Assembly: GCF_018977255.1 (NCBI RefSeq)
Contig: NW_024704771.1
Location: 930,001 to 994,000 of the forward strand
Direction: 5' to 3'
From: Callorhinchus milii
Lineage: Eukaryota
DNA length: 64,000 nucleotides
A program made the translations under genes and the position numbers. Below are positions 18,331 to 64,000 of the stretch, one piece after another. The notes under the pieces were generated by a model. It had not been told where the DNA came from. It was given only the letters and a program-made list of their open reading frames with translations, and searched no databases. How positions within the stretch are numbered: position 1 is the first letter of the stretch; each line of letters begins with the position of its first letter.

Positions 18331-18401
18331 GTCAGTGACAGGGGCGGCCACGACATTTTCTCCTGAACCACTTTCACTGTGGATTAGTTTCTTTTAGCTT
18401 T

Positions 18402-34290: not shown

Positions 34291-34639
34291 TTCTTGTTGT
34301 TATCTTTACAGTGTTAGTGAAGACTGGATCGAGCCATCAGTGTTACGAGGAGATTTGACTCTGGCAAAGACTTCACAGTGTGGAGAGAAATGATCCACAT
34401 GATCAGCCTTGGTGAACAGTTCCAGACTCGTCCCTCACTATAAAGCCCTCACTGTGTGGTAGATGCAGAGAGTTGTTTTTGGTCAGCAGTTGGGTGTCTG
34501 ACACACACGGAAACCCATCACCATGCTTCTGAGTCTCTGAACCAGTCTGAGAGTTGCATATACATATGCCACCTCCACATGGAAATTTCCCTGTGTCTCA
34601 CCAGTCCTGACTGTGGGCTCCAGGAGGTCACCACCTCAC

Positions 34640-35070
34640 ACAGACAGACATTCATCCAAAGAGAGACACGCACTCACAGACACAGAGAGACACACACTCA
34701 CAGACACAGAGAGACACACACTCACAGACACAGAGAGACACGCACTCACAGACACAGAGAGACACACACTCACAGACACAGAGAGACACACACTCACAGA
34801 CACAGAGAGACACACACTCATAGATATAGAGAGAGACATACAACCAGAAAGAGAGACACACCGAGACACATACTCAGAGAGAGACTCCTATTCAGACAGA
34901 GAGAGAGACACACACACAGATTCACACCCAAGAGAGAGAGTGACACACACATAAGTAGGGAGAGACACACAGACACGCTCAAACACCCAGAGACAAAGAC
35001 ATACAGATACAGACACGCGCACAGACAGAGACACACACATACTTGCGGAGACACACACAAACACAAACAA
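34640..35070. repeat. CA/GA compound minisatellite (CACTCACAGACACAGAGAGACACA)n
   Basis: Direct reading. Confidence 0.9.
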
Positions 35071-35072
35071 AC

Positions 35073-35580
35073 ATAGGAACAGGAGTTGGCCATTCAACCA
35101 TTCGAGTCTGTTCTGCCATTCAATTAGATCATGGCTGATCTGTACCTGAACCCTATCCATTCCAATTTCCCACTTTTTCCCCCGTATCCCTTGACACCCT
35201 GAACTACCAAAAACCTCACGCTTGAAGGTGTGGATGGATTAAGAATCCACAGCCTTTTGGAGGAGAGAAATCCAGATTTCTACCACCATTTGAGTGAATA
35301 AATGCTTCGTGATTTCACTTTTAAATGGCCTGGTTCTAATTTGAAGATTATGCCCTTGTTTTAGATTTCCCACCAGAAGTAATAGCTTCTCTGTAACTAC
35401 CCATTCAAATCCGTTCACCATCTCAAACACCTCAATCAAATCACCCCTCAACCTTCCAATCTCAAGGGAATACAATCTAAGTTTACGCAGCCTTTCCTCG
35501 TAACGTAACCCTTTGAGGCCTGGAAACATTCCAGTGAACCTGTGTTGCACCCCCTCCAGGGCCAATTATATCTTTCCTGA
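35073..35580 (-). mobile_element. CR1 LINE 3' fragment
   Basis: ALEGVQHRFTGMFPGLKGLRYEERLRKLRLYSLE..RLRGDLIEVF is the CR1 ORF2 C-terminus; CR1-type 3'UTR. Confidence 0.9.
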
Positions 35581-41820: not shown

Positions 41821-42455
41821 CACTGTGTGAGGTTAGTGACTGAGCTCAGTCACTGTGTGAGGTTAGTGACTGAGCTCAGTCACTGTGTGAGGTTAGTAAC
41901 TGAGCTCAGTCACTGTGTGAGGGTAGTGACTGAGCTCAGTCACTGTGTGAGGGTAGTAACTGAGCTCAGTCACTGTGTGAGGTTAGTGACTGAGCTCAGT
42001 CACTGTGTGAGATTAGTAACTGAGCTCAGTCACTGTGTGAGGTTAGTGACTGAGCTCAGTCACTGTGTGAGGTTAGTAACTGAGCTCAGTCACTGTGTGA
42101 GGTTAGTGACTGAGCTCAGTCACTGTGTGAAGTTGGTAACGGAGCTCAGTCACTGTGTGAGGTTAGTGACTGAGCTCAGTCACTGTGTGAGGTTAGTGAC
42201 TGAGCTCAGTCACTGTGTGAGGTTAGTGACTGAGCTCAGTCACTGTGTGAGGTTAGCGACTGAGCTCAGTCACTGTGTGAGGTTAGTGACTGAGCTCAGT
42301 CACTGTGTGAGGTTAGCGACTGAGCTCAGTCACTGTGTGAGGTTAGCGACTGAGCTCAGTCACTGTGAGGTTAGTGACTGAGCTCAGTCACTGTGTGAGG
42401 TTAGTAACTGAGCTCAGTCACTGTTTGAGAGTAGTAACTGAGCTCAGTCACTGTT
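41821..42455. repeat. 30-bp palindrome-containing minisatellite, copy 2 (18 regular units plus variants)
   Basis: Direct reading. Confidence 0.97.
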
Positions 42456-44523: not shown

Positions 44524-47500
44524 GTGAGCAACACTGTCATTTTCTGCTTAAGCGTCACTGTCACAATAATATTGCTATTCATTACAGAGGCAACTAAAAG
44601 ATTAGATCACTTATCAAAGTAGAGAATAGTTTTGTTTCTGATAAAGAAACCACTCACTGTAACTGGAAGCTGGAGCTTGTAATCACTGCAGCTAAACCTG
44701 CCCCAGGAAAGTGCTGTATCTGTCAGCTTCCCTCAGTCTATCAGCCCATAACTGTGGCTGAAAGGTCCTCACCAAACCTGGTCTATTCCCAGCTTCTCCT
44801 GATCACCTGTTCAGTGATGAACAACAGTGTCTCATTTCTGATAGAAATGACAATTCCCGACTGTGTTAATGAGCTGAACGAGAGGACATTCTGGCTGTTT
44901 ACACTGGAGCCGTATTTCAAACTATATTTGCAAAGGTTGTGAGCTGTCCGTGTTCACAGCACTGAACTCCGAGAGTAAATGTATCAGGTGAAGCTGAGAT
45001 GGGAAGATGGGAGGTGAGTATTCTGGGAAGATGAGGTCAAATGGGCTGAAGGACTTCCTTCATCTGAACCTCTCTTGTGATCGTGTGAAATGTGTCCACT
45101 GATGAGATTATAAACTGGTGATTTATATTCATCTTTTAAATGGTAACATTGCTGCACATTTCCAAATAAAGTATATTTCTGTAATAAGACAGTTTCTGTG
45201 CAGACTCAGGTCAGTTCATATCTCAGACTTTCAGGGCTTCAGGAAACCAGACACTGTAAAACTGTCAGTGACAGTGACACAAATAAACTATTGCAACTCA
45301 TAGTTTCACATTTAAATAGAAACAAATCATAATAATGGTTTAATAATTGATATTGTATTGTTCACTAGATTCTTTTATAGTTAATGGTCCACGTCAGCCT
45401 GTCCTCACAGCTCTGGGGAACGATGTCACTCTGGGATGTTGGTTAACACCAGGAGTGGCTGCAGATATGATGGTCGTGGAATGGAGTAAATCTGATTCTG
45501 GGGTTGTGGTGCATTTATACACACGTGGAGTGGATCGACTTGATCAGCAACATGAAGCCTACAGAGGAAGAACTGAGCTCATTAGAGACGGGATGACTCG
45601 AGGAAACTTGTCTCTCAGACTGAAGAACGTGAGGTGCTCAGACCAAGGAGAATACACATGTTCTGTGAGATCCACAACAGATTTTGGTGAAACAACAGTG
45701 GTTGTGAAAGTTGAAGGTTTGTTGTGTTTAACCTGTACATTTCCCTATTCTAAGCTCATGTTCCCACCCCGTCCCAGTCAATATATTTACCAACCTCAGA
45801 AATTCACCATAATCTCTACCAGAGCCCGGTGTGAACTGCACAATGTAATGATTTGTCATTCTGGCTCAATGTGGGCAATTGGCTGCCGCGTAACACCCAC
45901 AAAATACAGTCAATTCACTGTACAGTATATTCTGTGAAGGGCTTTGAGACATCTTGAAAATGTGATAAGGCTCTATATCAAGTGAAGGATTATTATTGTT
46001 CATTGGAAGGACTCTTGTTGTTTGGTTTAGAGGGTTGTGGGTTGAAGCCCCACATCAGCACCTGAGCTCATAGTTCAGGCTGATACCACACTCTGTCACT
46101 GAAGGACACTCAGTGTTAGAGGCTGACGTTTGGTGAGATGTGAAAATTGACAGTTTGCACCTCTTTGTTCAGGTGGACATTAATGATCCCATAAACTGAT
46201 GGAGAAGGTCGTGTCCTGCAGATTAATTGGCCATTCACTTGATGGTACAAATGACTATAACCTTAGCCTTCAAAAAGAGTCACGACATGTGAATGATTAG
46301 GTGTAAAGTACTGAATGTTTTGATTTGATCAGTTGTTACAAAAGTTCTGTCTTTGTAATTGTTGATAACACAGTGTATTATTGTTACAGACCGCAGACGG
46401 CTGCCCTTGATTTCCATGGCAGGTTACCAGGACTCGAGGCTTAAACTCACCTGTAAATCAAAAGGCTGGTATCCCGAACCTCGTGTAGTTTGGTTTGATA
46501 GGAGTGGAGCAAAGGTGAAAGCCAAGACTGAAACATGCACTCAGGGGTCTGAAGACTGTTGGAAATGTGAAAGTAGCATTGATATAACCAGAGATTCTAC
46601 AGACAGATTCACGTGTCTGACAGCAAACTTTCTGGAGGAAAGTGAGGCGAATATCCAGGTATCAGGTCAGTGAAACATTTGGAAAAATATAAACACTTCA
46701 ATGCAACGTATTACAGTTCATATTGTGATGTGGAACAATCCACAGCAGCTCCCAATGTTCAATCTGAGGCTTTCATTCTGATTTCCTTTCAGCCACTTTC
46801 ATCATAGGATAGTTTGCTATTGTAATTGCAAATAATTAATTACACAACAACAACAACAAGATTCCATTTGTATTGCGCCTTTCACGTTGGGAGGATGTCC
46901 CAAGGCGCTGGACAGTGTACAGCATTTCATGTATTTCTGAAATACATGAATTTGGTGTGTGTGGCTTTTCGCTGTTAGTGTTTCCAGTCAGCTGTGGAGT
47001 CCTGTAGCTCAGTGGTTAGAGCCTCACAAGCGAGAGACCTGGGTTTGATTGTCGGAGACGCTGTCCTTCAGATAAGACGTTCAGGTGGATTTTAAAGATC
47101 CTCTGCCACTTTTCATGAAGAGAAGGAAGTTTTCCAGGTATCCTGGCCAACAATCCTACAGATAAATTGGTCATTCACTACATAACTGTTTCTGGACATT
47201 GATAGGAATGATAGGATTATTATTACATATGACACAAAATTTCTTTGTGTTACAGAAGTGTTTTTCCACCGAGGCCCAGACTGGCTGGTGGCTTTCCTTG
47301 TGACGTTCACTCTTGTGCTTGGAGCAGCTGGTGTGTTGATGCTCTTCTGCAGAAAACGATTGAAAAAAGTAAAAGGTATTAAATGATTTTAAGTTTCCCC
47401 CAAAATATAATCTTTACTTTCATCCTTTATATAATCCATAACATATTAAGGAGAGCACTGGCAACGTCTGAGCACAGGTGACGAAAGCGAGAGTGAGTGT

Positions 47501-50500
47501 CTCTGATGTGTTGGGTGTGAGGTAGGGGCGGAGGCGGGTGATGTGGTGGGGGTGAATGAAGGCAGTTTTGATGAGGCACTGCAGTTGAGTGAGAAAGGAA
47601 AGCTGGGGATCAAAGCGCATGCCACGGTTGTCACTGAGAGAATTAGAGACAGGCTGGGGAAGCTTGAGGAGGTCAGAGCCAGAAGGGGATGGCTTCAGTC
47701 TTATCTAAACAAACAAATTGAGATGGATCTTGAAGGAGGCATGAGAAGGGGTGAGGTGGGATGGAGTTCCAGAGGGTGGGGGGAGAGAGGCTGAAGGCTC
47801 GCCCACCAATGTTGGGGTGGGCAAAGCGGGGAACATGAAGCAGGCCGGAGGATGCTGAGTAGAGGGAGCGACAGGTTGGTAGGAGGTTAGGAGGTCACAG
47901 AGGTAGGGAGGAGAAAAGCCGAGGAGGTGAGGATCAGGAACTTGGAACTATATCATCTGAGTCATGTGGAGTCGGGCAATCAGGAGGGTGATAGTGTCAC
48001 GGTGTCTGGAGCAGAAGAGGACACAGGCTACAGATTTCTGGATAATCTGCAGCCTGTGGAAGGAGGAGTTGGGGAGGCCGACAAGCAGGGAGTTTGTGTA
48101 GTTGAGCCTGGATGTGATGAACGCATGGATGAGGGTCTCGAGAGAAGTGGCAGAGCCGGGCAATGTTGCGGAGGTGGGGAAAGGCGAAGCGGGTCATGGC
48201 AACGATATGGGGGATGAAGGTCTGTTAAGAGTTGAACAGGACACTGAGGTTCCGCATTGGCTCCATGATGTGTAGAGTGCAGCCATGAAGGGCGATGTCA
48301 GTGCCCGGGTTATGGAGGCACTGACAGGAGCAATGCAGGACGGCCTTGGTCAACTGGAGAAAGTTAGCTCTCATCCAGGACTTGATGTCTGACAGACATT
48401 CTGTGAGGACAGCAGTGATCCTGGAGTCGAGGTGGAGGTGGAGTTGGGTGTCACCACATATATGTGGGAGTTGACTCCATGTCTATGGATGATGTCACCA
48501 AGAGGGATCTATACTGAGTTGGAGGAAATTTTGTCTCGTCCAGGCCTTGATATCTCACAATCAACTGGACAGATCATCAGGGACCTGGGGTCGAGAGTAG
48601 ATTTGGGGTCATCCACATCCATGTGGGAATTAAGTCCATGTCTGTGGATGATGTTGAGGGACAGAGTGACTGTGTTGGCCAGTATGGGGGCAATTGGGTG
48701 ATCAGGAGATGGGTGGGGAGGGAGCTGAGTGAGCAGGTGGTGAGCTTTATGTTATGAGAAGGAAGATGTGGTCAGGTGTATTTCGTTGATTTTTGTTGTT
48801 GAACGTGAAAGGCGCAATATAAATGTCATTTTGTTATTATTATTCTCTATTGTCTCTCACACATAAAGAGAAGTTGTGGGATAAAAGGCTGGAAATGTTA
48901 ATCAGAATGTGTCTTGTCGTTTCCAAACTGCAGAAGGATTTGCTCACACAGAGGGATGTGAAGATGTCGAATTCTTTGCCCCAGAAATCTGTAGAGAAGG
49001 AATCAATTTGAATATTTAAATGAGAGACAGAGACTTGGAAAGTGGAAATATTTGGTGAAGAGCAGGGAATTGGATTTAAAAGATTAAAATTGGTGGAAGA
49101 GGCTCATGGGCTGAATTGTCTTCTCCTGTTCCTCTTTTCCTTTACTAAAAGCTGATGTCAATTAGAAGTTACCTAAAGCAGAGCCTTTAGTGCACTGTTA
49201 TTTTCACTAATATTTAATAAAATATTGTATTAACATTTCTGCTGGATTGTTTCTGTTACATTTAAGGGAAACGTCCAACAGTTACTGATGGGGACGACAC
49301 TGACGATTGTGTTTTTATTTTCCAGTTTATGAAAATCTAAAAAAGGGATTTAAAAATCTGGGTAAGTAACAACATTACAAACATCCCCGAGCCTCAGCCT
49401 CCCCGAGAGTCAGGTCCTCGGAGACCTACCACAAGCCCTTCCTGTGCTCTCTGGTGACCTCAGCATTTATATACATAACACAACCAGACACATGCACACA
49501 CACCCAGACACATGCGCACACAAACACACACATGCACACCCAGACACATGCACACCCAGACACATGCACACACACACAGACACATGCACACACAAACACA
49601 CCCAGACACATGCACACCCAGACACATGCGCACACAAACACACACATGCACACACACACAGACACATGCACACACACGAATGTGCACACACACAAAAAGA
49701 GTCACAGAACAACCTGAACTAAACCCACCTCCTGTGGAGTGAAGAAATGTGTGATGATTCTGTGCAGATTAGGAGAATTTCATTGTGTTTTGACTGTAGA
49801 GAGAAAGTGAAACTTACACTTTAACACAAATTAAATCATTCTGATACAATGAGTGATTTAAAAAACATGGGATTCAGGGATGAGCAGGAAGCCAGAGACG
49901 GCCAAATGAAGGGGTGGGTAGAGGAGTGGGGTGTGAGCAGGTCGGAGAGTTAGGGAGGTGCTGGACATGAGGTGATTTGTCAGTGAGTGTGAGGATCTTG
50001 AAATGGATCTGTTCAGTGATAGGGAGCCGGTGGAGCCCGGCAAGGGCTGGAGTGACGGGGTTTGGAGTTTGTTGTGGGTAATGTACCAAATGTTAAGGAT
50101 TATTAATATTATCATTATTCACTTATTGAGATTGTAAATGTTTAATCAGTTTTGTCAGTTTCTACAGTGCAAAAAATCCCCATTCTTAATGTGAATTACA
50201 ATACAAATTGTGAAATAACAATAGATAAGGAAGAAAATCTTATATTTTTGATTTGTTTACTGATTTAATTTCCTTCATTTGATGTGAGCACGTATCCTCC
50301 TATCACAGTGAGTTTGGAAAGTTTGAGCTTAAAGGAAAATAAAGAAACTGAATAAAATAAACCAGATAAGTTTGTTAACTTTTTTTCAAAAATTTAAAAT
50401 TACATTTTCTAAAACCTTTTCTTTTGTTTTAAAGATAATGAACTGAAATCTGCCAAACAAGGTACAGTACATTGTGTTATTGGCACTAAGTGTTTATGAT

Positions 50501-53500
50501 GGAATTCCATCAGTGATGATGTCCCATAAGTGAATCAATCAATGACGACTGACTTCAACATTCAAACCGTCTTCACTCAATGGCTTTCAGTCTCGTGAGA
50601 AACTTTACATTGTTTATTAATATTTGTTTCTTTCTTTAGACCTAAAATACATGAAAAAAACACTGGGTAAGTTTTAATCTCCTGGAGCGTGAAATAAGTT
50701 TCCTTCTCATCGCGCCTCCCCTTGTTTTAACCGGATGATTCTGGGAAGGGTCAGTGGGAAAGGGGGTTAGTGAGAACTTTGGATAATGATAAGCTGTGAG
50801 GTTTCAGCAGGAAAAACATGAGCAATTCCCCTCAATCCATCCTCTGTGGACCACAAGCCTTGCTTCTGGACAACCCATGTCTAAACATTAGTAAACCCGG
50901 GAGCATGGCGCTGGGGAGAGGGTTCATTCTGTATCAGACAGACACGGAAACTCTACACACAGTTTGTGGAACTCCGAATAGTTTGGTTTGGAGACTCTTA
51001 ACCCCAGTGATGGGTTTGTGTGTGTGTCAGACTCTGACCAAAACTAAGTCCATGTGTTTTTTTTAATTGGTGAAAACAAACTCTGATTGGGATTTGGTGA
51101 GATCCTGAAGCCTCAGTGGTGAAGGGTTGTTTATCAGCTGAATCACAAGACTGTGAATAGGTTCAGTGTGTAACAGTGGGGGGTGATTTGTGGAAATAAA
51201 CAATCAATAAATATATTGTTTCCTTTCAGAACTGAAAAAACAATTCACCAAATCAGGTACTTGATGACTTTATCCTCATTTACTGTTGTTGATGTTATTG
51301 ATGTAGAATTGTGCTGCTTCTCAAAGGATCAATTATTATCACCTCTGATAAAGATAATAAATTAAATGTAAGAAATACGATTATATTAAGATTATAAGCA
51401 AAGTTTGACGTGAACTTTCAATGTACAGTTCAGTCATCTCACATCTACAAATGTGATCAGTTTGTCAGACTCTGTAACCTGGAGAGATCTGAACCCAGAT
51501 ATTGAGTTACACCGATAGATTACAGTAGAACAGAAGAAATGCTGGAGGAAAAAAGCCCAATATCCATCCAGTTTGCCTTCCACCTTCCTGGCAGTCGCAC
51601 GCATATCCCATAATGTTATTTCCTAAAAGAACATTTCTAATCTGTGTTTGAAAGAATCTACTCAATAATAATCCTTGCATTTGATATAGTGCTTTTCACA
51701 TCTTCTAGACGTTTCAAAGCGCTTCACACAATGTACAGTAAAGTGAATTTACTGTATATTTGTGAGCGAAAGGCACAGCAGCGTCCCACAAACAGTCAAG
51801 GATTGAAGTGACCAATTTATTATTATTTTCCTTTCTGGAGGGATTATTATCAGGTGTGTGGAGTAAGGAAACTTGCCCATGGTTTTTCCCTGTGGGAATT
51901 GAACCCAGGTTTCTCGCTTGCAAGGGGAGTGCTCCAACCACTGAGCTACAGGACTCCACAGGATCATTGGTGAGATCATACTCTTAATACAGTCTCACCA
52001 ATGACTTACAAAGTGACCCGATAACCCCACTATTTCCACTTTCTATTGATCTTTTGATACATCCCAACAATAGATTGTCAGGAATAACATATATTGAAGT
52101 TTACAAAAGATGAAATTATAAGCAAAATCTTATTAAATTAAAACTTCTGTTTCTCTCCAGAGTGGCAGGTCGTTGGCAGTTGTAAATGTAAGTTACCCCA
52201 CATTGCAGTCTGGTTATACACCCCACATTACAGGCTGGTTATAGACCCCACATTACAGGCTGGTTATAGACCGCACATTACAGGCTGGTTATAGACCCCA
52301 CATTACAGGCTGGTTATAGACCCCACATTACAGGCTGGTTATAGACCCCACATTACAGGCTGGTTATAGACCCCACATTACAGGCTGGTTATACACCCCA
52401 CATTACAGGCTGGTTATACACCCCACATTACAGGCTGGTTATACACCCCACATTACAGGCTGGTTATACACCCCACATTACAGGCTGGTTATAGACCCCA
52501 CATTACAGGCTGGTTATAGACCCCACATTACAGGCTGGTTATAGACCCCACATTACAGGCTGGTTATAGAGACCCCACATTACAGGCTGGTTATAGAGAT
52601 CCTACATTACAGGCTGGTTATAGAGACCCCACATTACAGGCTGGTTATAGAGATCCTACATTACAGGCTGGTTATACACCCCACATTGTCAGTGTGCGGA
52701 GAAAGTTGCTCTAATTGACGATGTGTAGAAATTATCAGCAAAATGCAGGTTTATCAAGTGATTAACAAAATATCGCTCATAACCTAATTTTCAGTCTAAT
52801 TTCCAGTTGTGTAAAGTGCACACATCACACTGTAGATGTGCATCCCAAAAAATACCGTATGTGTGACAGGACGGGTGGGTGTAGCAGAGACTGTTGTGTC
52901 AAGTGGACTCACCGTTGCGAGTTGTGTTAGTGACGCCCTGATAATGAGCTCCTGAGCCCAGCTGATAAACTTGTGTTTTCTCTCAGGCTGCAAGGATCTT
53001 CTTGTGGGGTTTGGTAAGAGACTTGATTGAATACAATGCTTCATCACTTCGTTGAGACGTCTCAAAGCGCTTCACAGAATATACTGCAAGGAGAATTGAC
53101 TATATTTTCTGGGCACATCGCAACTGCTAATTACACACAGACAGCAGTGTCCCACAAACAGTCATGGATAAATCACCAAATTACTATTTTTGGGGAAGAA
53201 ATTATTACCCCCAGAAAGGGATCCACTAATCGACTAACGATTGGGTTCCTACTTCCTGCGAGGTAAACAGAGGCAGGTGGAGTAAGGAAACTTGCCCAAC
53301 GTTTCACCCTACCAGGAATCAAACCCAGTTCCTCTCTTTCTTCCAAGGCGAGTGCTCTAACCACTGAGCTACAGGACTCTGGAATATTAATGCAATAAAG
53401 AAAATGATTGTGTAATGACGCATAAACACAACTGTATAAAACAATCTCAATTGAACAAATTGATTCTAACTAAATTTTCTTTCATTTCCAGTCAAGGCCA

Positions 53501-56500
53501 GAATCCACAGTTATGCAGGTAAGACATTAATATAGTATAAATGACACAATTCAGAACTGCTCAGATCCCACCCCAGATTTAGCACAAAGATGTACAGACA
53601 GAAGGTCCCAGCCTGGTCTGTGCTGAGGTATCTGATCTCAGTCGGGGAGGGAGGGGCTCTACACATGGCCTCAGGGCCCGGATATGGATAGACAATAAGC
53701 CAAAGTCACTGTGCCTCATCACATTCAGGGATTCCTCCCCCACTCCCATCCCAGGCTTTCTGTAAATACCGGGTGAGGAGAGGATCAGGCTGTGAGGCCC
53801 TCAATGGTTGAATAGCCAACCAACACTGGCTGTCTAGACTCTCACATGAACAAGTCACTTGAGAGAGCTACAGACTAGAACCAGACACAGTGAGTGTGAG
53901 CACTGAGCCCGACTCCTGCTCATCGCCCTCTGCACGGTCACTAAAGCTGTGATGCCATGTTGAGGTTGTAGAGATGCCAGTCCAATCCTGTGCCTCAGGC
54001 GCTGGGCACAACAGCTGTTAGTGTGTGGCTGGAGAATGGTATGTGACTGTACCTGGGGAAGGTACTGATAGACCAAGTGCTACATACACTGGTATTGTAT
54101 TTACTACATTACTTGGTGTCATCCACACTGTCATCTGTCGTAAAATACTGACTTTATATTGTGTGAAGGAATCTGATTACTGACCAATAGCAGTCAGTTG
54201 TCATGACTGGACGCTCCTGTGATGTTCTCGTTTGAGTTCCTCTTGACTCAGGACATCAGTGTGTTTCAACTAACGATGACCACATTATGGTGACATGGTG
54301 TTTGCCCACAGCAAACTCTGATCTTGTTGTCTGATCAGCAGCCCATATATTTATATATAACTGACCCCCCCTCCCCCCGATCAATCAACCTGTCCACTCA
54401 GTTTCAAGATCTAAATTAGTCCACATCGCTTCTCCCAGAGGGACACCGCACCCAAATCACACCCAGACCTCATCTACGCCATACACAGATCAAACCCAGA
54501 CCTCACCTACACCAAATCTATACCACCCAAACCACAACTACACCACACCCAGACCTCATACAGACCACACAGGGCACACAGCTGTTGGATAATTTTCCGT
54601 TTCTACCTTCTTTGTATACTTCTGCAATTGGATGTTAGTTCATTCAAGCAATAAACACAGTCACACAGTTCAATCACTAAGAGTACATTTATTCAAATAA
54701 CTCAGGACCAGTCAGTTCAGTCTGGTACAGAGTTAGGGTCGTAGCTTCACCAAGCTGACGACCCCGTTGTAGGATTTAACAATGGCATTTATACAAGTAT
54801 GGGGAGGATCCTTCTCCTCCAATCGTTAGATTTGGTCATAGGTGACAATGTGGTCGAGACATAGGATGTGTATTGGGCAACTATCCATTGTCTCATACTC
54901 CAAGGCTGCGGTTAGTCTGCGCATATATCTGTTGATTCAGGTTTACTTCCTTCATGGAACCAGTCTGCGCATACATCTGTTGATTCGGGCTTACTTCCTT
55001 CATGGAATCAGTCGTAACTGGTTCCATGCAGTTGAGCTGCACGTTTCTAAGATCAGATAACACAGTCTGCCAAGCTTCTCATTGCAGGGTTTACTAAAGG
55101 TTATAATTTGTGCCTTTTTATCCATCATTCCCTCCTTTTATAATCTTTATTAACATTGCCATGTGCCGGTACAGTCCCCAATTTATTTTCTCGGATGCCT
55201 CTTGTTGCCTTGTGACAATTTAAAGATGCATCGTCATAGATGGGATCAATTGTACCTTGCTTTCATGGGTCAGAATAATAATCCTTCATATCATCATCGT
55301 CTGACAGATTATCGTCTGACACCACCTCCATCGTAAGTGATGGTGTTACCCCCACACACTTAGTGACGCACACTTTAATAAGGTGAATAAGGACACAAAT
55401 CCCCAGTAATAATACCAGTAACACAACCCCTGCTTTAAGAACCCAGGCTCTCCATCCTTCAAATAAGGACGCCCACCAATTAGATATTCCACTTGGTTCC
55501 TGTAAGCTTTTTCTGACATGTCTGGGACACCAACCCATCCTAGAGATATCCTGTAACTGCATGTGCTATTTCCCACCTCTGTTCCCTTCCCCTCCTTAAT
55601 AAAGCAAATCTGGCCTGGTATATTGCTCACCTTAAACCCTGGCGATATCTTATCATGGTCAAACCTTCGCACATACCTTGTACTGTTCTGTTTTTCACAT
55701 GATAGTGTCTCATTTCCCCAGAGCCCACTTATGTTGAAAGTGACTCCTGCTTGGAGTCCTAACACAGTTTCTGCTTTTGTCAGCGGAATCGCATAGAGGA
55801 GAAAACCAGTCTGTGAACTATGGGGTATTTGGGTGCACACCCAACACCCTGTCACATTTGACGCCTTTACTGCCTTATGTGCAGCTAAGAGATATGTATT
55901 CCTCCCCAGACGTGTTACCAGTCCAAACCATAGTCCAAAACTGAGAATCCGTAGCCATGCCATCTTGCTAGTTGCTCCTTACAGTGGTGATGTCTTCTTG
56001 CAGTGGCTAACGTGGACCCAGGTGTTTCGTTCTGCAATCCGTACTGCTGTTGGTGTGGTTAGTAGCACCTGATATGGTCCTGTCCACTTTGGTTGATGCC
56101 AATGCTTCCTTTTGATGTCTTTAATCAGTGTCCAATCTCCTGGCTGCAGTGGGCATGGCTCGGTGTTCTCATTCAGTTCCTGGGGAGGTAATACATTTCT
56201 CATAGTCATTTTATTCTGAAACATTTTTTTCATGTATCCTGCAAGTCCGGCCTCCTCCAATTCTGTACGTTCTCCCAGCTGAGGCATATAATATGCTCTA
56301 CCCATAACAATTTCATACGGGGAGAGTTTTTTGCTCCCAGGTGTAATTCTCATACTTGTCAGTGCTAACGGTAGACATGCCACCCAACCCTTCCCTGTGG
56401 TTTCCATGGCTTTCTTCAGCTTATTTTTAAGTGTCCCGTTATGTCTTTCTACCATTCCTGCAGACTCTGGATGGTAGGCACAGTGGTTCTTTAAGGTTAT

Positions 56501-59500
56501 CCCCAAGTGGATCCCCACATTTCTTAGGACCTCATTCTTAAATTCCGGCCCATTATCACTGTATAATATTCGCGGGATACCCCATCTTGGTATTATTTCT
56601 CTGCATAATATCTTTGCCACTGTTACTGCATCCACATGGGTGGTGGGGAAAGCTTCTACCCAACCCGAGAAAGGACATACCATTACTAGGCAATATTTCT
56701 TTCCTTCGCATACGTTCAGATGGATGAAATCCATCATCCAATGAGAGAAGGGTTCTTTTGCCAATGGAATCTTGCCTTGTTTACATTTTAGTTGTCCTTG
56801 TGGGTTATTGCGTAAACATGTTATACATTGTTGACAAAATTTTTGTAAATAAGTGGTTAGTCCGAATGTCGTATATTGTTGGTCTATCATTGTCCTCATC
56901 CCTCCTTTTGAGACATGGCATTTGCCATGGCTCAATCCTGCTGCAATGGGAAACAATGATCGTGGTAAAACTGGCAGTCCAGTGTTTCCAACCCATATGC
57001 CGAATGTGTTTAGTTTGCATCCCATGTTTTTCCATCCTCGCTTCTCAAGGGTGCCTGCCTCTGATTGCATTGCTTTAATCAATGCCATGTCAATCGAGGG
57101 TGGTGTTTGTGACACTAATACTTCTGCGAGGGGCACTGCCTGGGCAGTTTTATCTGCAAAGGCATTTCCCTTTGACACCAGGTCCTTCGCAGAAGTGTGG
57201 GCAACACACTTAAGTATCGCTAATTGTTTTGGGAGTTGTAATGCATCAATTAGGTTCAATATTAAATCAGCATGGCAAATTGGTTTCCCTGTGGAGGTAA
57301 CCATACCCCGATTTCGCCACTGTCCAGCAAATATGTGGCAAGTGGAATGGGCATATTGTGAGTCTGTATAGATATTAACAACTTTTCCCTTCCCCAGTAC
57401 GCAAGCTCGGGTAAGCGCCACAAGTTCAGCCATTTGTGCCGAATATCCTGCTGGGAGTCTGGCTGCTTCTATTACTGTGTCCTGAGTGCATACAGCGTAA
57501 CTGCTTTGGGAACGGCCCCCCGTATCCTTTTTGCATGAACCGTCCACAAAGTATGTCACATCTGCATTCTCAAACCTTGTATCCGCCAAATCCACTCGCG
57601 CCGCCACTGACTGTGAGGTTTCTTCCAAACAGTCATGCGGGCTACCCTCGGAGGGTACCGGCAGCAAGGTTGCCGGATTCAATACTGTACATCGTTCAAT
57701 GGTTACATTTGGGCAGGTTAGCAATGTGGCCATACAGGACAGCTGGCGTGCTGGCGATAGGAAAGCGTGTTTAGTTTGGAGCAATAATACCGAGACTGCA
57801 TGCGGCACCAACAACTTCAATGGTTGGTATAGGACCAGGGGCAATGATGCGCGAACAGCCAGGGCTGCTGCTTCCACTGCTTGTAAGCAGCAAGGAAGGC
57901 CTCGAGCCACCGGATCCAGTCGGTGTGAGTAGTAAGCCACGGGCCTCATCCGTGTTCCAAATGGTTGTAATAGGACAGATGCCATAAACCCATTTTTAAC
58001 GCAAACAGTTTGAGTATATGGCCTTGCAGGGTCAGGATGCGCCAGGGTCTCTGCCCCAGATAAAATGGTTTTTATAATTTCAAATGCCTTTATAGCCTCT
58101 GGATTCCATTCAATTGCATCCTGTGCCTTCATAGGGGCATCATAAATCAGCCCTAACAAGGGCTGAGTTAGCTCCGCATATGAAGAGATCCATGCACGGC
58201 AGAAGTTAGTCATTCCTAAAAATGACATCATCTGTTGTTTAGTTTCGGGTCGCGGAGCTTGCATTATTGCAAGCTTTCTGTCTTTTAATAAGGATTTTCC
58301 TTCCCTAGAAATTGCATGGCCCAGATATTTGACCTCGGGTAAACAATATTGCAACTTTTTTCGGCTCACTTTATGTCCCCATTCTCCCAAAAATTTTAAG
58401 CAGGCCAGAGAATCTTGGCGGCAAATTTCGTTGGATGGGGAACATATAAGTATGTCATCTACATACAACAAAACTTGACTGCCACCCGGGGGCTCAAATT
58501 TTGCCAGATTACTTTCCATACATTGTGAGAATATGGCCGGGGATTCAACAAATCCCTGTGGACATCTGGTGTACGTATATTTCCTTCCCAAAAATGTGAA
58601 GGCAAACCAAAATTGGGAGGCCTTGTCAACCGGAATAGAAAAAAACGCATTTGCTAAATCAATTACTGTAAACCAAGCTGTATCAGGTCGCAAATTGTTC
58701 AGCAAGGTATTGGGGTCGGGTACAACTGGGGTCCGGGGAATCACTGCCTTATTTACAGCCTGTAAATCCTGAACCAATCGCCACCCTTGTGATGGCGCTA
58801 CCTTTTTTACTGGGAACAGGGGGGTGTTACATGGAGAGTCAGGGCAATCCACTATGATGCCCTTCTCCTTAAGTTCCTTAATTATGGGTTCAATTCCTTC
58901 AATGGCCTCTGGTTTCATAGGATACTGCCGTTGGTATGGGCGGTGTGTTCCTTTTGGTATGATTTTAATAGGTTCAATCCCTTTTATTAGTCCTACGTCA
59001 GCTGATCCTTTGGACCATAGAGCATCAGGCAGAGCATTCAACTCCGCCTCCTGTTCTATTTCCACTCCTAACAGTCAGGGAACCATCTTCCCTGAGTGCA
59101 TCTTCCTAACTCTTTCACATTGATACACCCAATTCAAACATTGTGAGTAGAGACCTGTCCTCGGGGAATACCATATCCCTGCATCCTGAGTCTCTTCCCA
59201 ATCCTGTGCTTTTATCCCACAATCTACCAGGTTACCCACTTGTTGCCATGACTTTTTGCATCTCTTTGCAATTGATACATGGGGGTTCCCTTCTCCCTGG
59301 TATAGCTGATCATCTAACGGTTGGAGTAAAACTTTCCCTCCCATATCAGTTGCATTCCAATATATACATTGAATCGTTAATCGTGTGGAACTTCCCAATT
59401 TGAAATGTCTCTCATATGGCAACGAACTTCCCCCTTTTTCACGGTACCACATGGTACAGTGCAGATCCTCAGGCAGGTGGAAGTCACTTTGTTCCATGAC

Positions 59501-62458
59501 CCGCTGGTGTGCCAATCTAAGCAGTTCCTGTTGGAATTGTCCTGGCCCTTCCTTTAACTGTAGGGCATAATAGTATTGTGGTTCCCCCCTTTCTTGGATA
59601 ATTAGGGTATCTTCAATTTTTTTTTTGTACGTAACCTTAACTGCTTCCCATCGGTCGTCACCCATAGGTATCACTCCTAACTTGAGTTTAGTTAACACAT
59701 CTCTCCCTAGTAAATTAACCGGGCATGTCATTGATATAACCACTTGTGCTTCTACAGTCTCTTTATTCTTGTAACAGAATTCAAGAGGTTCCGTGACGCA
59801 TTGTGTTTCTAAGTCTCCGGACGCTGACCGAATATCAATTTTTTCCTGACTCTTTTTATAAGGAAAAGTTGCGTCTCTCATCGTAATAACCGTTCTACAT
59901 GCTCCTGAATCGCATAAAAACGGTATGTCAATTCCATTCACTCTTAATGTCAACCAAGCACTCCCAGGAGACTGTATTAACGCCAATATACGTTCAGTCT
60001 CCTCTCTCTCCTCCTCTCCTTCTTCTTCGGGCTTTTGGGACTTCCACCGGTTTGGACAATCCCTTGCCCAGTGTCCCATTTTCCCACAAACATAACATTC
60101 TCCCCCATTATTGTTCTTTTGCTTCCTCTTTCTATTCTGCCATGGTTGTTTATTAACTTCTTGTGATATAAATCCCTCATTATGCCTATTATTCCTCTTC
60201 TCTTCCCTTGTTATTCGTTCAAAATGGATGGCATGATCTAATACTGGCTGGAGTGCCCCTGTACTCCATGTTATTAGATGTTGTTTTACCAATTTTGAAA
60301 TATGGGGCACCATTCCCGCCAGAAATGCATTCTTAATTTGTTGTGCCCAAACTCCAGTATCATCATGTGGATGTGGTGGTTCGATTCCACTATTGGAATT
60401 AAACACCTTGCGCAATCGCGTATAGTATTGCATACACGTTTCGTCTTTTCCCTGAATACAATCCGTTATCGCCGAATAGTTACATCTGGCTCTATAAAAT
60501 GTAACTATTCTCCCCATTAATTGGTCGAAGGGTCCCCAATAATCATGCTGGGAGCGGTTTGCTGCTACCGGTGGACGGTCATACATTCTTGGTGCTCCCT
60601 CATTGTCTAATGCTGTCCAATCTCCCCCGACCTGACACCATTCCTGACGCAACACCTCTCTTATGCACTGCTCGGTTTCTAAACTATTTAGCCTGTAACT
60701 TGCCATGGTTTGATACATAAAATCTCGAAATTCGGTTCCCCCTTGATTGGGATGGGGACAGGCGATCATTGCCCTCTTAACATCCTCCATTCCCCATGCC
60801 CTATACACGTACTGGGTGTTCCCCTGTCCGTCTGCCACTTGTATCATTGGGAAATTCCCTGCTGTTCCTACATTTACCTGCATAGGTGGGTTTGAAGGGG
60901 AGCTCGGGAGTGCGGATTTGTTTTGATAATTATCATGGAGCCATCTGACATATGGGTCAGCATTGTTTGGCGTCCTCGGATTATATGCTCGGTTTAAAGG
61001 TGCCGTGGGCTGTTCTGACCCATACGCTGGTGGAGCACCATGCCCATTTTCCGGGCGTTGAGAGGCTGGAGTCTCTAAATCCTCCTTCCCTGTGTAAGCC
61101 AATAGTTTTGTTTTGGTTTCTGTCAATTCACCCAGCCGTCGATATTCCGTGGCTTTCATATGCCATACTTGTGCTTCCCCATAATGATATTTCAATTGTT
61201 TTTTCTTATCATCTCCACTTTTCTCTTTTATTTTATTCAATAATTCTTGTGTACTCTCAGGTTTTAATCGCCCATCAAATCCAAATTTACGTTTCCACAT
61301 TGTTTCCCAATCACCACTTCCTTCTACTACCTTATTCATAACCTTCGCATTTCGACTCACTAATTCTCGGGTTTCTTTCTTACAACAACTGCTGCGACAG
61401 TCCCCTTTACTGCCTACACACCCCATTCTTGCAGAATTTAAAATGATCTCGTCACTTACCCTTTCCTAGGTGAGTCAGTCTCGACCTCTACGTACCAGCC
61501 TCTAGATCCTCTTCGATCCCTGGTGTCCGATTCCTCCGGACCTGACTATACTCACCCGAAGGCGTAAGATATTGAGATCCCGGACGAGCCCCCAATGTTG
61601 GATAATTTTCCGTTTCTACCTTCTTTGTATACTTCTGCAATTGGATGTTAGTTCATTCAAGCAATAAACACAGTCACACAGTTCAATCACTAAGAGTACA
61701 TTTATTCAACTAACTCAGGACCAGTCAGTTCAGTCTGGTACAGAGTTAGGGTCGTAGCTTCACCAAGCTGACGACCCCGTTGTAGGATTCAACAATGGCA
61801 TTTATACAAGTATGGGGAGGATCCTTCTCCTCCAATCGTTAGATTTGGTCATAGGTGACAATGTGGTCGAGACATAGGATGTGTATTGGGCAACTATCCA
61901 TTGTCTCATACTCCAAGGCTGCGGTTAGTCTGCGCATATATCTGTTGATTCGGGTTTACTTCCTTCATGGAACCAGTCTGCGCATACATCTGTTGATTCG
62001 GGCTTACTTCCTTCATGGAATCAGTCGTAACTCGTTCCATGCAGTTGAGCTGCACGTTTCTAAGATCAGATAACACAGTCTGCCAAGCTTCTCATTGCAG
62101 GGTTTACTAAAGGTTATAATTTGTGCCTTTTTATCCATCAACAGCTACATGTCTTAATGATAACAGCTGACAACATTCTGCTTTCTTACAGGTTACGAGG
62201 AGGTTCTCACAGAATTAGGTAAGGTATTTGGGTCAGTTTGATAAAGAGCCATTCTGTCACTCCCCTTTCCCCGAATAAATGTTAAAATATATTAATGGGG
62301 AGCGGGAGCGAGGAGGGGAATATAAAGCAGTTTGGGGAACAGAGAAAATGTGACTGGCAAAACCGTATAAAACCATCCTCATCAAATAAATCTATACCAA
62401 CTGAACTTCCTTTATTTTACAGAAAAGACCCAATTTGGGTTGTACAGAAGTTATGCAG
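44466..62458 (+). CDS. Butyrophilin-like gene copy 2 (spliced; open through all visible exons; 3' end probably beyond the window)
   Basis: SP, IgV, IgC, TM and eight phase-1 mini-exons join without stops. Confidence 0.85.
45369..45716 (+). CDS. BTN-like copy 2 IgV exon
   Basis: 348 nt, IgV motifs, canonical splice sites. Confidence 0.95.
46390..46665 (+). CDS. BTN-like copy 2 IgC exon
   Basis: 276 nt, [10 protein letters not shown] motif. Confidence 0.95.
47256..47375 (+). CDS. BTN-like copy 2 TM exon
   Basis: [40 protein letters not shown]. Confidence 0.92.
47445..48735 (-). mobile_element. Degenerate L2 fragments (paralog of 4725-6050)
   Basis: Colinear and highly similar to copy 1. Confidence 0.85.
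49326..49361 (+). CDS. BTN-like copy 2 36-nt mini-exon ([12 protein letters not shown])
   Basis: ttccag acceptor and G|gtaagt donor. Confidence 0.85.
50435..50461 (+). CDS. BTN-like copy 2 27-nt mini-exon (DNELKSAKQ)
   Basis: AG/GT boundaries, open. Confidence 0.75.
50640..50666 (+). CDS. BTN-like copy 2 27-nt mini-exon (DLKYMKKTL)
   Basis: ctttag acceptor and G|gtaagt donor. Confidence 0.78.
51230..51256 (+). CDS. BTN-like copy 2 27-nt mini-exon (ELKKQFTKS)
   Basis: tttcag acceptor and G|gtactt donor. Confidence 0.75.
51665..51960 (-). mobile_element. tRNA(Ala)-derived SINE, present only in copy 2
   Basis: Reverse-complement head ggagtcctgtagctcagtggttggagcactccccttgcaagcgag; absent near 9560. 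Confidence 0.82.
52161..52187 (+). CDS. BTN-like copy 2 27-nt mini-exon (EWQVVGSCK)
   Basis: ctccag acceptor and T|gtaagt donor. Confidence 0.72.
52197..52688. repeat. 25-bp minisatellite, uninterrupted in copy 2
   Basis: Same unit as 9683-12815, without the L2. Confidence 0.95.
53030..53382 (-). mobile_element. tRNA-derived SINE
   Basis: Reverse-complement head gagtcctgtagctcagtggttagagcactcgcc. Confidence 0.8.
53492..53518 (+). CDS. BTN-like copy 2 27-nt mini-exon (FKARIHSYA)
   Basis: tttccag acceptor and G|gtaaga donor. Confidence 0.75.
54583..55127 (-). repeat. 3' LTR (545 bp)
   Basis: TG..CA ends with imperfect 10-bp IR (TGTTGGATAA / TTATCCATCA); minus-strand TATAAA (~54790) and AATAAA (~54690). 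Confidence 0.97.
55128..55140 (-). promoter_or_regulatory. Polypurine tract (AAAAGGAGGGAA)
   Basis: Abuts the 3' LTR on the minus strand. Confidence 0.92.
55263..55963 (-). pseudogene. env: Internally deleted env: signal peptide and SU N-terminus (ORF 55963-55346) joined out of frame to the TM C-terminus (to 55263)
   Basis: [16 protein letters not shown] leader, CWVC motif and N-glycosylation sequons; second frame gives [34 protein letters not shown] (membrane anchor). No furin site, fusion peptide, ISD or CX6CC seen. Confidence 0.9.
55979..59074 (-). CDS. pol: Pol (RT - RNase H - integrase), uninterrupted, in frame with the upstream ORF after a single TGA
   Basis: RT ([22 protein letters not shown]), RNase H (FVDGS, AELVAL, YTDS), IN ([24 protein letters not shown]). 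Confidence 0.96.
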   Translation of the reverse strand: MLGVEIEQEAELNALPDALWSKGSADVGLIKGIEPIKIIPKGTHRPYQRQYPMKPEAIEGIEPIIKELKEKGIIVDCPDSPCNTPLFPVKKVAPSQGWRLVQDLQAVNKAVIPRTPVVPDPNTLLNNLRPDTAWFTVIDLANAFFSIPVDKASQFWFAFTFLGRKYTYTRCPQGFVESPAIFSQCMESNLAKFEPPGGSQVLLYVDDILICSPSNEICRQDSLACLKFLGEWGHKVSRKKLQYCLPEVKYLGHAISREGKSLLKDRKLAIMQAPRPETKQQMMSFLGMTNFCRAWISSYAELTQPLLGLIYDAPMKAQDAIEWNPEAIKAFEIIKTILSGAETLAHPDPARPYTQTVCVKNGFMASVLLQPFGTRMRPVAYYSHRLDPVARGLPCCLQAVEAAALAVRASLPLVLYQPLKLLVPHAVSVLLLQTKHAFLSPARQLSCMATLLTCPNVTIERCTVLNPATLLPVPSEGSPHDCLEETSQSVAARVDLADTRFENADVTYFVDGSCKKDTGGRSQSSYAVCTQDTVIEAARLPAGYSAQMAELVALTRACVLGKGKVVNIYTDSQYAHSTCHIFAGQWRNRGMVTSTGKPICHADLILNLIDALQLPKQLAILKCVAHTSAKDLVSKGNAFADKTAQAVPLAEVLVSQTPPSIDMALIKAMQSEAGTLEKRGWKNMGCKLNTFGIWVGNTGLPVLPRSLFPIAAGLSHGKCHVSKGGMRTMIDQQYTTFGLTTYLQKFCQQCITCLRNNPQGQLKCKQGKIPLAKEPFSHWMMDFIHLNVCEGKKYCLVMVCPFSGWVEAFPTTHVDAVTVAKILCREIIPRWGIPRILYSDNGPEFKNEVLRNVGIHLGITLKNHCAYHPESAGMVERHNGTLKNKLKKAMETTGKGWVACLPLALTSMRITPGSKKLSPYEIVMGRAYYMPQLGERTELEEAGLAGYMKKMFQNKMTMRNVLPPQELNENTEPCPLQPGDWTLIKDIKRKHWHQPKWTGPYQVLLTTPTAVRIAERNTWVHVSHCKKTSPL
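59075..61426 (-). CDS. gag-pro: Gag-Pro-2H polyprotein, 783 aa (myristoylation Gly2, CA, single CCHC knuckle, aspartic protease, 2H-phosphoesterase-like domain)
   Basis: MGCVGS N-terminus; [14 protein letters not shown] (60056-60097); FLCDSGA (59903-59911) and NLLGRDVL; HCT (59459-59461) and HVS (59279-59281). Confidence 0.95.
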   Translation of the reverse strand: MGCVGSKGDCRSSCCKKETRELVSRNAKVMNKVVEGSGDWETMWKRKFGFDGRLKPESTQELLNKIKEKSGDDKKKQLKYHYGEAQVWHMKATEYRRLGELTETKTKLLAYTGKEDLETPASQRPENGHGAPPAYGSEQPTAPLNRAYNPRTPNNADPYVRWLHDNYQNKSALPSSPSNPPMQVNVGTAGNFPMIQVADGQGNTQYVYRAWGMEDVKRAMIACPHPNQGGTEFRDFMYQTMASYRLNSLETEQCIREVLRQEWCQVGGDWTALDNEGAPRMYDRPPVAANRSQHDYWGPFDQLMGRIVTFYRARCNYSAITDCIQGKDETCMQYYTRLRKVFNSNSGIEPPHPHDDTGVWAQQIKNAFLAGMVPHISKLVKQHLITWSTGALQPVLDHAIHFERITREEKRNNRHNEGFISQEVNKQPWQNRKRKQKNNNGGECYVCGKMGHWARDCPNRWKSQKPEEEGEEEREETERILALIQSPGSAWLTLRVNGIDIPFLCDSGACRTVITMRDATFPYKKSQEKIDIRSASGDLETQCVTEPLEFCYKNKETVEAQVVISMTCPVNLLGRDVLTKLKLGVIPMGDDRWEAVKVTYKKKIEDTLIIQERGEPQYYYALQLKEGPGQFQQELLRLAHQRVMEQSDFHLPEDLHCTMWYREKGGSSLPYERHFKLGSSTRLTIQCIYWNATDMGGKVLLQPLDDQLYQGEGNPHVSIAKRCKKSWQQVGNLVDCGIKAQDWEETQDAGIWYSPRTGLYSQCLNWVYQCERVRKMHSGKMVP
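61577..61594 (-). promoter_or_regulatory. Primer-binding site for tRNA-Pro (TGGGGGCTCGTCCGGGAT)
   Basis: 18-nt canonical tRNA-Pro PBS, 1 nt downstream of the 5' LTR. Confidence 0.95.
61596..62140 (-). repeat. 5' LTR (545 bp)
   Basis: Same length as the 3' LTR; 4 substitutions seen by eye. Confidence 0.97.
62192..62218 (+). CDS. BTN-like copy 2 27-nt mini-exon after the ERV (GYEEVLTEL)
   Basis: ctttcttacag acceptor and G|gtaagg donor; phase 1, open. Confidence 0.7.
   Translation, partial: VTRRFSQN
62423..62458 (+). CDS. BTN-like copy 2 36-nt mini-exon ([12 protein letters not shown])
   Basis: ttttacag acceptor and GCAG|gtaaga donor; 3' end and following intron resemble 53492-53560. Confidence 0.68.
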
Positions 62459-62854: not shown

Positions 62855-64000
62855 AACAACAACTTGGATTTGTATAGTGCCCTCCATACCGGATGGCGTC
62901 TCAGAGCGCTTCACAGTAACAGATCCTGGTGTCAAGTGAGGGGGAAGAAGGTGACCAAAGGCACGGTCAAAAGAAAGGTCTTTAGCCGAGACCTAAAAGC
63001 AGGAAGGGAGGGCACAAGGCGAAGGGAGTGAGGAAGGGAGTTCCAGAGCCTCAGGGCATAGTGGCTGAAGGCACAGCTGCCAATGGTGGAGCGGAGGAAT
63101 CGGGGGACAAGGAGGAGGCCAGACCCGGTGAAGCGAAGGCAACGGGCATTGTTGTGAGGAGAGAGGTCAGAAAGGTAGGGGCAGAGGAGTGGAGGGATTC
63201 AAAGACAAGATGGAGGGATCTGGGACAGGCAGCCAGTTCAGTCTGGCAAGGATTGGGGTAATCGGGGAGCGGAGTTTGGTGCGGGTGAGAAAGTGGGCGG
63301 CAGAATTCTGGATGACCTGGATTTTATGAATAGTAATGGAGGGGAGACCGGTAAGGAGGGCATTTGAATAGTCCAGCCGAGAGGTGACAAAGGTATGGAC
63401 CAGGGATTTAGCGGCTTTTGGGGTGAGATATTGGTGGAGACGGGCGATGCGTCGGAGGTGGAAGAAAGCGGTGCTGGTGTGGGGAAGGGTTTGGAGAGTT
63501 TTAGGGGAAGGTCGGGTAGGTGGAGGAGGTGGGAACCGTGCCATTTAAGACATTGATGAGAGCCAAAGAGTATGGCTTCTGTCTTGTCAACATTCAGCTG
63601 AAGGAAATTCGCGCTCATCCAGCTCTTGAGGTCTGACAGGCAGCTGACAGAACATCAGGGGACTGGGGGTCGCAAAGTGAGGTGGAAAAATAGAGTTGGG
63701 TGTCGTCCGCATACATGTGGAAGTGTATTCCATCTCTGCAGATGACATTCCCAAGAGGGAGCATATAGATTAGGGAGAGGGCCAAGAATGGTTCCTTGGG
63801 GTAACCCTCAGGTAACCGAGTGAGAGCGGGAGGAAAAGCCGTTTGTGCAGATGTACTGCTGGAAGTTCGTGAGGTAGGACTCAAACCAGGAGAGTGCGGT
63901 CACACTGAGATGGATGGCGGAGGAAAGGTGGTGGAGGAGGATGTTGTGATCAACTGTGTCAAAGGCAGCAGAGAGGTCCAGGAGGACAAGGAGGCAGAGG
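62855..64000 (-). mobile_element. L2 LINE 3' portion (continues beyond the window)
   Basis: HTFVTSRLDYSNALL, MSANFLQLNVDKTEAIL, HMYADDTQLY; L2 tail at 62855. Confidence 0.9.

Follow-up and report, generated by a model that had tools for sequence, protein, structure and literature searches.

A CNPase-like 2H phosphoesterase domain encoded between the protease and pol of a class I endogenous retrovirus in Callorhinchus milii

What does a retrovirus encode in the 196 residues that separate its protease from its reverse transcriptase (RT), when these residues belong to neither enzyme nor to Gag? This question is raised by a provirus in the genome of Callorhinchus milii (assembly GCF_018977255.1, contig NW_024704771.1, forward-strand positions 930,001-994,000). 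All coordinates below are positions in the window, i.e. the whole 64,000-nt stretch of DNA that was analysed. In this provirus, an open reading frame (ORF) of 783 aa runs through gag and the protease and continues to a UGA codon, behind which pol begins. An initial annotation, made from the DNA letters, had proposed that the end of this ORF encodes a 2H phosphoesterase-like domain. We found such a domain to be present. The domain itself, the pair of conserved H-x-T/S motifs within it, the predicted fold, the purifying selection acting on it, the order protease-domain-UGA-pol in a single frame and the intactness of the present copy are all established. Our full reading goes further, and on balance we consider it probable: the 196 residues form a compact 2H phosphoesterase domain of the CNPase/RICH type, which fish-type class I retroviruses of a large lineage have kept in their pro frame and which would act through the mechanism set out below.

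The stretch in question lies on the minus strand, with a Pfam RVP match upstream and pol (RVT_1) downstream. Its description as lying between protease and RT is correct, because a UGA closes the ORF and pol comes next in the same frame. The positions first assigned to the domain, 59078-59600, fall in the right region but span only the last 174 of its 196 residues. Two short segments singled out at the time, EDLHCTMWY and NPHVSIAK, are both there, and their histidines (residues 656 and 716 of the ORF) are exactly 60 codons apart as claimed. We searched for a strict form of the motif (hydrophobic-H-hydrophobic-S/T-hydrophobic) in the 1811 residues of the 783-aa ORF and the 1028-aa pol ORF, and it occurs at these two sites only. 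When the domain sequence was shuffled, two or more strict motifs appeared in 16 of 100,000 shuffles. Direct comparison with known families returned nothing: the 196-aa region matched no Pfam family even at E ≤ 1, whether searched as a domain alone or within the whole ORF, and a single-sequence search of PDB with the domain gave no match.

Relatives of the domain turned out to be numerous. A word-indexed protein search with the domain as a query retrieved three relatives, each a protease followed by a 2H domain, with lengths of about 300 aa and identities of 77%, 59% and 58%. A profile built from the query domain and these three relatives was then scored against 1.84 billion cluster representatives, of which 160 scored E ≤ 1e-3 or better, 47 of them even E ≤ 1e-10. 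Six long repetitive proteins (P0019, P0083, P0088, P0094, P0143 and P0150) were dropped as spurious multi-stretch matches. Among 109 relatives scanned with Pfam, an RVP domain was identified in 60 and RVT_1 in nine, while a cellular domain was found in none; therefore, the family is retrovirus-borne. The relatives derive from fish-type and marine samples. A profile made from an alignment of 58 family members and run in the word-indexed database added two relatives, both already known, and no named cellular protein. A single-protein scan of IMG/VR produced no match, and no record turned up in an exact look-up of the 783-aa product.

The two motifs are about 90% conserved in this family. In the 90 relatives that cover the domain, the first histidine is kept in 81 and the second in 84; the threonine of the first motif is kept in 81 of 88 and the serine of the second in 78 of 90. 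Together with a tryptophan (Trp140, 87 of 90), these four residues show the highest conservation in the domain. The MAFFT alignment of 58 sequences gives the same picture, each of the four being conserved at 90% or more. Since the motifs are conserved across the 90 relatives, they are not a product of chance.

Selection on the domain was assessed by codon comparison of the window with three related loci, and the ratios of nonsynonymous to synonymous substitution rates (dN/dS) are quoted from the two pairs that are not saturated. For the domain, dN/dS is 0.115 (window versus L002) and 0.049 (L001 versus L003); for the protease, the same pairs give 0.047 and 0.129, respectively. In the saturated pairs, the proportion of nonsynonymous differences (pN) is about 0.27 versus about 0.8 for synonymous ones (pS). 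The domain is thus under strong purifying selection, with dN/dS as low as that of the protease. Such low values mean that it evolved as a working protein.

Structure prediction revealed what kind of protein this is. AlphaFold reached a mean predicted local distance difference test (pLDDT) score of 33.6 with an alignment of four sequences and of 90.5 with the alignment of 58 (predicted template modelling score, pTM, 0.82). In the latter model, a well-defined core of ~165 aa comes after a linker of ~28 residues that is modelled with low confidence. Within the core, a strand-helix-strand unit occurs twice, as expected of the two-lobed, internally duplicated alpha+beta fold of 2H phosphoesterases, and the H-x-T/S motifs open the strands formed by domain residues 69-75 and 129-134. 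A Foldseek search of PDB with the model produced 53 matches at E ≤ 1e-3. The best 50 of these 53 are all catalytic domains of CNPase (mouse, human or rat) or of goldfish RICH, with E-values from 8.5e-8 to 7.6e-6, probability 1.00, template modelling (TM) scores of 0.51-0.62 and sequence identity of 13-18%. The full-length alignment with the CNPase fold implies that both histidines of the model would face a single active-site cleft. The sequence profile of the family, compared with PDB sequences, also ranked goldfish RICH first (E 0.0099) and human CNPase next (E 0.02), with the first H-x-T motif aligned. Hence the proposal of a 2H phosphoesterase-like domain in this endogenous retrovirus (ERV) is borne out by the motifs kept in relatives, by the confident model and by its structural neighbours.

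We also compared the model with predicted structures of viral proteins (BFVD). The best match, Q2VF30_1 (E 1.8e-10, TMq 0.70), represents the opening segment of a long protein, which may be the Gag-Pro-Pol polyprotein of another fish retrovirus with the same protease-2H layout. The second and third matches are annotated as 'Envelope polyprotein' and come from walleye epidermal hyperplasia virus 1 (E 1.4e-8) and walleye dermal sarcoma virus (E 5.6e-7). Lower in the ranking are giant-virus RNA ligases (E about 1e-4), models of the phage protein Acb1 (1.2e-3 to 4e-3) and coronavirus ORF4b and ORF2 proteins (1.8e-3 to 4.8e-3).

Vertebrate CNPase and goldfish RICH (among others, PDB entries 2xmi, 1woj and 2i3e) are thus the best neighbours of the retroviral domain by both fold and profile. 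They have two H-x-T motifs, the first of which aligns with that of the retroviral domain. Nevertheless, there are clear differences. The second motif of CNPase contains a threonine (T311), whereas the retroviral domain has a serine at this position. The retroviral core is shorter, its identity to the cellular proteins is low (see above), the rest of the cellular protein is missing and the domain is embedded in a polyprotein. In cellular CNPase and RICH, the catalytic domain forms the C-terminus of a longer protein, whereas the retroviral domain sits between a protease and a stop codon, with pol behind the latter.

What might the domain do? The CNPase-type fold, the conserved motifs and the selection together point to a 2H phosphoesterase domain that is most likely catalytic. 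In 2H enzymes, the two histidines serve as general acid and general base, the threonines or serines hold the phosphate, and a cyclic phosphodiester is opened. By analogy with the CNPase-type fold, the likeliest reaction would be the conversion of a 2',3'-cyclic phosphate, located either at an RNA 3' end or in a free nucleotide, into a 2'-phosphate and a free 3'-OH. The initial annotation had left the choice between an innate-immune antagonist and an enzyme that processes RNA ends. The modelled fold leans toward the second branch, whereas the first is disfavoured, as members of the NS2, VP3 and Acb1 kind are reached only at E-values of the order of 1e-3. As judged from the model, 2',3'-cyclic phosphate ends or nucleotides are therefore the substrate that we favour over immune messengers. 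The role that we prefer, speculative as it is, would be the cleaning, inside the virion, of 2',3'-cyclic-phosphate ends on the genome or on the tRNA primer. Ends of this kind could be left by metal-independent host RNases. An alternative task might be the removal of 2',3'-cyclic nucleotides.

The position of the domain in the genome would bring the enzyme into the particle. Translation presumably yields the 2H domain within a Gag-Pro-2H polyprotein. In the window copy this polyprotein could be made directly, because gag, pro and 2H constitute one ORF, whereas most relatives would first have to read through a UGA that closes gag. Along with Gag, the polyprotein would be packed into particles, and the adjoining protease could then cut the 2H domain free; given where the domain lies, such a release is plausible. 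This genome logic has a precedent. Beta-retroviruses and non-primate lentiviruses encode a dUTPase in their pro or pol frame, and it likewise is an accessory nucleotide-metabolising enzyme that resides within Gag-Pro(-Pol) and is released by the viral protease. However, its fold and chemistry are unrelated to those of the 2H domain, so that the analogy extends to the genome logic only.

The codons that bracket the domain deserve attention in their own right. As pol continues in frame beyond the UGA that terminates the 2H domain, its synthesis needs readthrough, and Pol would be made only when this codon is read through. We inspected five related loci (L001, L002, L003, L004 and L006) that come from at least four independent samples. 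In all six loci, the window included, UGA occupies the same codon after the 2H domain and pol follows in frame. A second in-frame UGA lies between gag and pro in each of the five related loci; all ten stops over the two boundaries in these loci are UGA. The usual layout therefore seems to be gag-UGA-pro-2H-UGA-pol. At the gag end, the context is UGA-CUAG in two of the five loci (L004 and L006), and this context promotes readthrough. Protein ends also agree with a stop directly behind the domain: 66 of 97 relatives end no more than five residues from the end of the profile. The gag-pro stop present in all five related loci is absent from the window copy, and for this reason gag, pro and 2H are a single ORF there. 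We do not call this fusion a defect, because P0026, a long relative of 768 aa, has the same gag-pro-2H fusion.

From the sequence, the two bracketing UGAs suggest two successive programmed readthrough events. One may go further and regard the pro-2H cassette as a separate translational unit set between programmed UGAs, pol being reached by way of two readthroughs. Far more of the 2H enzyme than of RT would then be produced, and the particle would deliver it. Its targets could be 2',3'-cyclic-phosphate RNA ends (on the genome or the tRNA primer) or else cyclic nucleotide messengers, which would make it a counter to metal-independent RNases of the host or to nucleotide signalling in fish. We put this extended version forward tentatively and regard it as possible, though on the doubtful side. 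To our knowledge, double-readthrough expression has not been described for any retrovirus. A literature search that did not reach the primary papers on fish retroviruses found neither a retroviral double-readthrough scheme nor a two-UGA bracket, and the bracket may be new. If real, it would represent a novel means by which a retrovirus fixes its protein ratios.

Several observations weigh against our reading. TM-scores of 0.5-0.6 with a root mean square deviation of 4-8 Å indicate a divergent and shorter version of the CNPase fold. The profile match to RICH and CNPase is borderline and spans only profile positions 37-116, that is, the first half. The profile of the C-terminal half alone matched nothing in PDB, and because of this the equivalence of the second motif is drawn from the fold only. 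The spacing of the histidines differs as well, being 79 residues in mouse CNPase (H230 and H309) versus 60 here. The threshold of the Pfam 2H families (LigT_PEase, 2_5_RNA_ligase2, CNPase, AKAP7, Acb1 and others) was reached neither by the window domain nor by any of the 58 relatives. Below the threshold, matches to Acb1, tRNA_lig_CPD, LigT_PEase and 2_5_RNA_ligase2 were found among these relatives (best E-values of 0.0026-0.12, one or two members for each family). As for the expression of pol, a candidate readthrough-promoting hairpin (z = -2.6) follows the UGA in the window, but the four-locus consensus structure is weak, with little covariation.

The competing explanation that survives best, although we think it unlikely, is that the domain is an immune antagonist which destroys cyclic-oligonucleotide messengers in the manner of Acb1. 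Retroviral DNA is sensed by cGAS. An antagonist delivered in the particle could act right after entry, for example on the cyclic GMP-AMP (cGAMP) that cGAS produces upon sensing reverse-transcribed DNA, and expression in the gag-pro frame would indeed put the enzyme into the incoming particle. Acb1, directed by phages against the cyclic-oligonucleotide-based antiphage signalling system (CBASS), has the 2H fold and is itself a viral destroyer of immune nucleotide messengers. It surfaced among the weak Pfam matches (two of the 58 relatives, best E 0.062) as well as among the viral fold matches given above. However, likeness to the CNPase fold exceeds likeness to Acb1 by about four orders of magnitude, cyclic-dinucleotide phosphodiesterases are absent from the 50 best PDB matches, and the hosts of Acb1-bearing phages belong to another domain of life.

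A second kind of immune antagonist would be a 2',5'-phosphodiesterase which degrades 2',5'-oligoadenylate (2-5A) and thereby blocks RNase L, as coronavirus NS2, the C-terminal domain of rotavirus VP3 and cellular AKAP7 do. These proteins belong to the same superfamily as the retroviral domain, the viral ones are accessory enzymes, and the coronavirus ORF4b and ORF2 models did come up in the viral fold search. We nevertheless hold this option to be very unlikely. Matches of the NS2/VP3/AKAP7 type, with E-values of about 2e-3 to 5e-3, are weak beside CNPase, and none of them is among the 50 best PDB matches. Moreover, some teleost genomes are reported to lack OAS genes (PMC2852836). With relatives stemming from fish-type and marine samples, the hosts of these viruses may not possess the 2-5A pathway.

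Alternatively, the domain might be a non-catalytic module, for instance a captured CNPase-like piece that binds Gag or associates with the membrane and modulates assembly. Cellular CNP is reported to bind the matrix (MA) region of human immunodeficiency virus 1 (HIV-1) Gag and to inhibit particle formation (PMC7471995). An interaction of this protein with a retroviral Gag is thus on record, and in our case the domain is physically part of the Gag-Pro polyprotein. Yet no position other than one tryptophan is conserved better than the four catalytic-type residues, which a purely structural role would not predict, and we give this explanation little credence. Finally, the idea that there is no real domain, the motifs being accidental and the stretch a spacer or decayed sequence, could draw on the lack of a Pfam match, the empty single-sequence PDB search and the poor four-sequence model, but it is refuted by the 160 clusters, dN/dS of about 0.05-0.12, the pLDDT of 90.5, the 53 PDB matches and the rarity of double motifs in shuffled sequences, and we set it aside as practically excluded.

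Returning to the favoured reading of a CNPase/RICH-type phosphoesterase, we asked how it relates to what is known of fish retroviruses. A 2H domain in walleye dermal sarcoma virus was described by Mazumder, Iyer, Vasudevan and Aravind in 2002, as cited in PMC9503650. According to a 2016 review (PMC4977317), which cites Basta et al. 2009, a CNPase is occasionally present among the products of epsilon-like ERVs in ray-finned fish. These sources agree with the statement in the initial annotation that 2H-like inserts had been noted in fish retroviruses. With a 2H domain in walleye dermal sarcoma virus and CNPase ORFs in fish ERVs already in the literature, a domain of this kind is not without precedent. 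What is new here is a further, intact member of the family with a confident structural model. The walleye retroviruses resemble the window provirus in being fish retroviruses with a 2H domain, and they supply the second and third matches of the viral fold search. They differ in that the match resides in the 'Envelope polyprotein', whereas in the window provirus the domain is joined to the protease, ahead of pol. This difference in genome position would imply either a separate capture or a relocation relative to the walleye viruses. The ERVs of the Basta type carry the label CNPase (2',3'-cyclic nucleotide 3'-phosphodiesterase), and our fold search arrived at CNPase independently.

The element that carries the domain is a complete-looking class I (gamma/epsilon-like) retrovirus, as is evident from its pair of long terminal repeats (LTRs), target-site duplication, primer-binding site (PBS), polypurine tract, genes in one frame and a murine leukaemia virus (MLV)-type integrase C-terminus. 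Positions of all its features are collected in Table 1. The LTRs are 545-bp direct repeats with TG...CA termini and differ by four mismatches (99.27% identity); the provirus is a young copy. The TGG at the start of the PBS is the complement of the CCA end of a tRNA. The 783-aa ORF begins with MG, a myristoylation-type start, and contains a late-domain-like PPAY motif and a CCHC zinc knuckle (aa 443-459). Pfam matches in pol comprise RVT_1, RNase H, rve and MLVIN_C (E 4.2e-12 for the last). The env gene is broken. It has suffered at least one large deletion, being much too short, and at least one frameshift, as its two pieces are in different frames. No Pfam env family was matched by this remnant. 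Rfam gave a single sub-threshold chance match on the provirus and nothing else.

Table 1. Features of the provirus and of its 2H domain (window coordinates)
Feature	Position	Strand	Evidence
Whole provirus, class I gamma/epsilon-like, 7558 bp from LTR to LTR	54583..62140	-	LTR repeats, TG...CA ends, target-site duplication
5' LTR, 545 bp, with TATAAA and AATAAA motifs	61596..62140	-	
3' LTR, 545 bp	54583..55127	-	
Target-site duplication GCTGT	62141..62145 (upstream copy); 54578-54582 (downstream copy)	-	Letters read directly
Primer-binding site, 18 nt, TGG at start, after the 5' LTR	61577..61594	-	
Polypurine tract adjoining the 3' LTR on its upstream side	55128..55139	-	
gag-pro-2H ORF, 783 aa, open throughout, stop included	59075..61426	-	
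Retroviral aspartic protease, aa 492-584, DSG active site	59675..59953	-	Pfam RVP, E 1.1e-13
196-aa region after the protease, aa 588-783: low-confidence linker of ~28 aa and 2H phosphoesterase domain	59078..59665	-	
Core of the 2H domain, folded, spanning domain residues 30-190 with pLDDT mostly >90	59096..59578	-	AlphaFold model, CNPase fold matches
First catalytic-type motif, H-C-T, His aa 656 (59459-59461), opens a beta strand	59453..59461	-	
Second catalytic-type motif, H-V-S, His aa 716 (59279-59281), opens a beta strand	59273..59281	-	
UGA stop at the end of 2H, next base C, pol onward in the same frame	59075..59077	-	
pol: RT, RNase H and integrase; open; 1028-aa ORF plus 3 in-frame codons before its first start	55979..59074	-	
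env remnant, broken, 205-aa and 99-aa ORFs	55263..55963	-	Position, signal-peptide-like start, CxxC, C-terminal membrane anchor

The rest of the window contains genes and repeats of other kinds. Two nearly identical ORF pieces with an immunoglobulin (Ig) V-set domain lie about 43 kb apart on the plus strand (2496-3098 and 45347-45937; Pfam E 1.4e-13 and 2.1e-14, respectively). Both probably represent exons from duplicated genes, butyrophilin-like or of another Ig-superfamily kind, and given this pair, the region may be a segmental duplication. A fragment of a non-LTR retrotransposon RT is found at 15998-16561 on the minus strand (Pfam RVT_1, E 1.2e-22). A second one, at 63167-63884 on the same strand, was recognised by eye only. 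Just outside the provirus, at 52120-52652, there is a tandem array of about 20 copies of a 25-bp unit. ARAGORN called three tRNA-Ala-like elements (9087-9159, 22685-22755 and 51885-51955) and a tRNA-Pro-like one (53304-53378). We considered the tRNA-Pro-like element as a source of the primer and rejected it, since its 3' end mismatches the PBS of the provirus and it looks like a tRNA-derived repeat. Low-complexity or microsatellite-like tracts (CA-rich, with units of 6 to 33 bp) at 49457-49730, 18384-19104, 41827-42381 and 34456-35076 contain long spurious ORFs. A run of 25 N bases (20995-21019) represents either a gap or a mask.

Retroviruses rarely carry extra enzymes, and those that they do carry, such as dUTPase, have revealed pressures that hosts exert on replication. 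Retroviral 2H domains have been noted computationally since 2002 and 2009. The window copy, being intact and young and having a confident model, now makes it easy to compare the structure of the domain and its distribution. Strong selection in at least 160 diverged lineages, combined with a position that would lead to packing into every particle, would point to a host pressure in fish that bears on RNA ends or on nucleotide messengers and that retroviruses have to counter.

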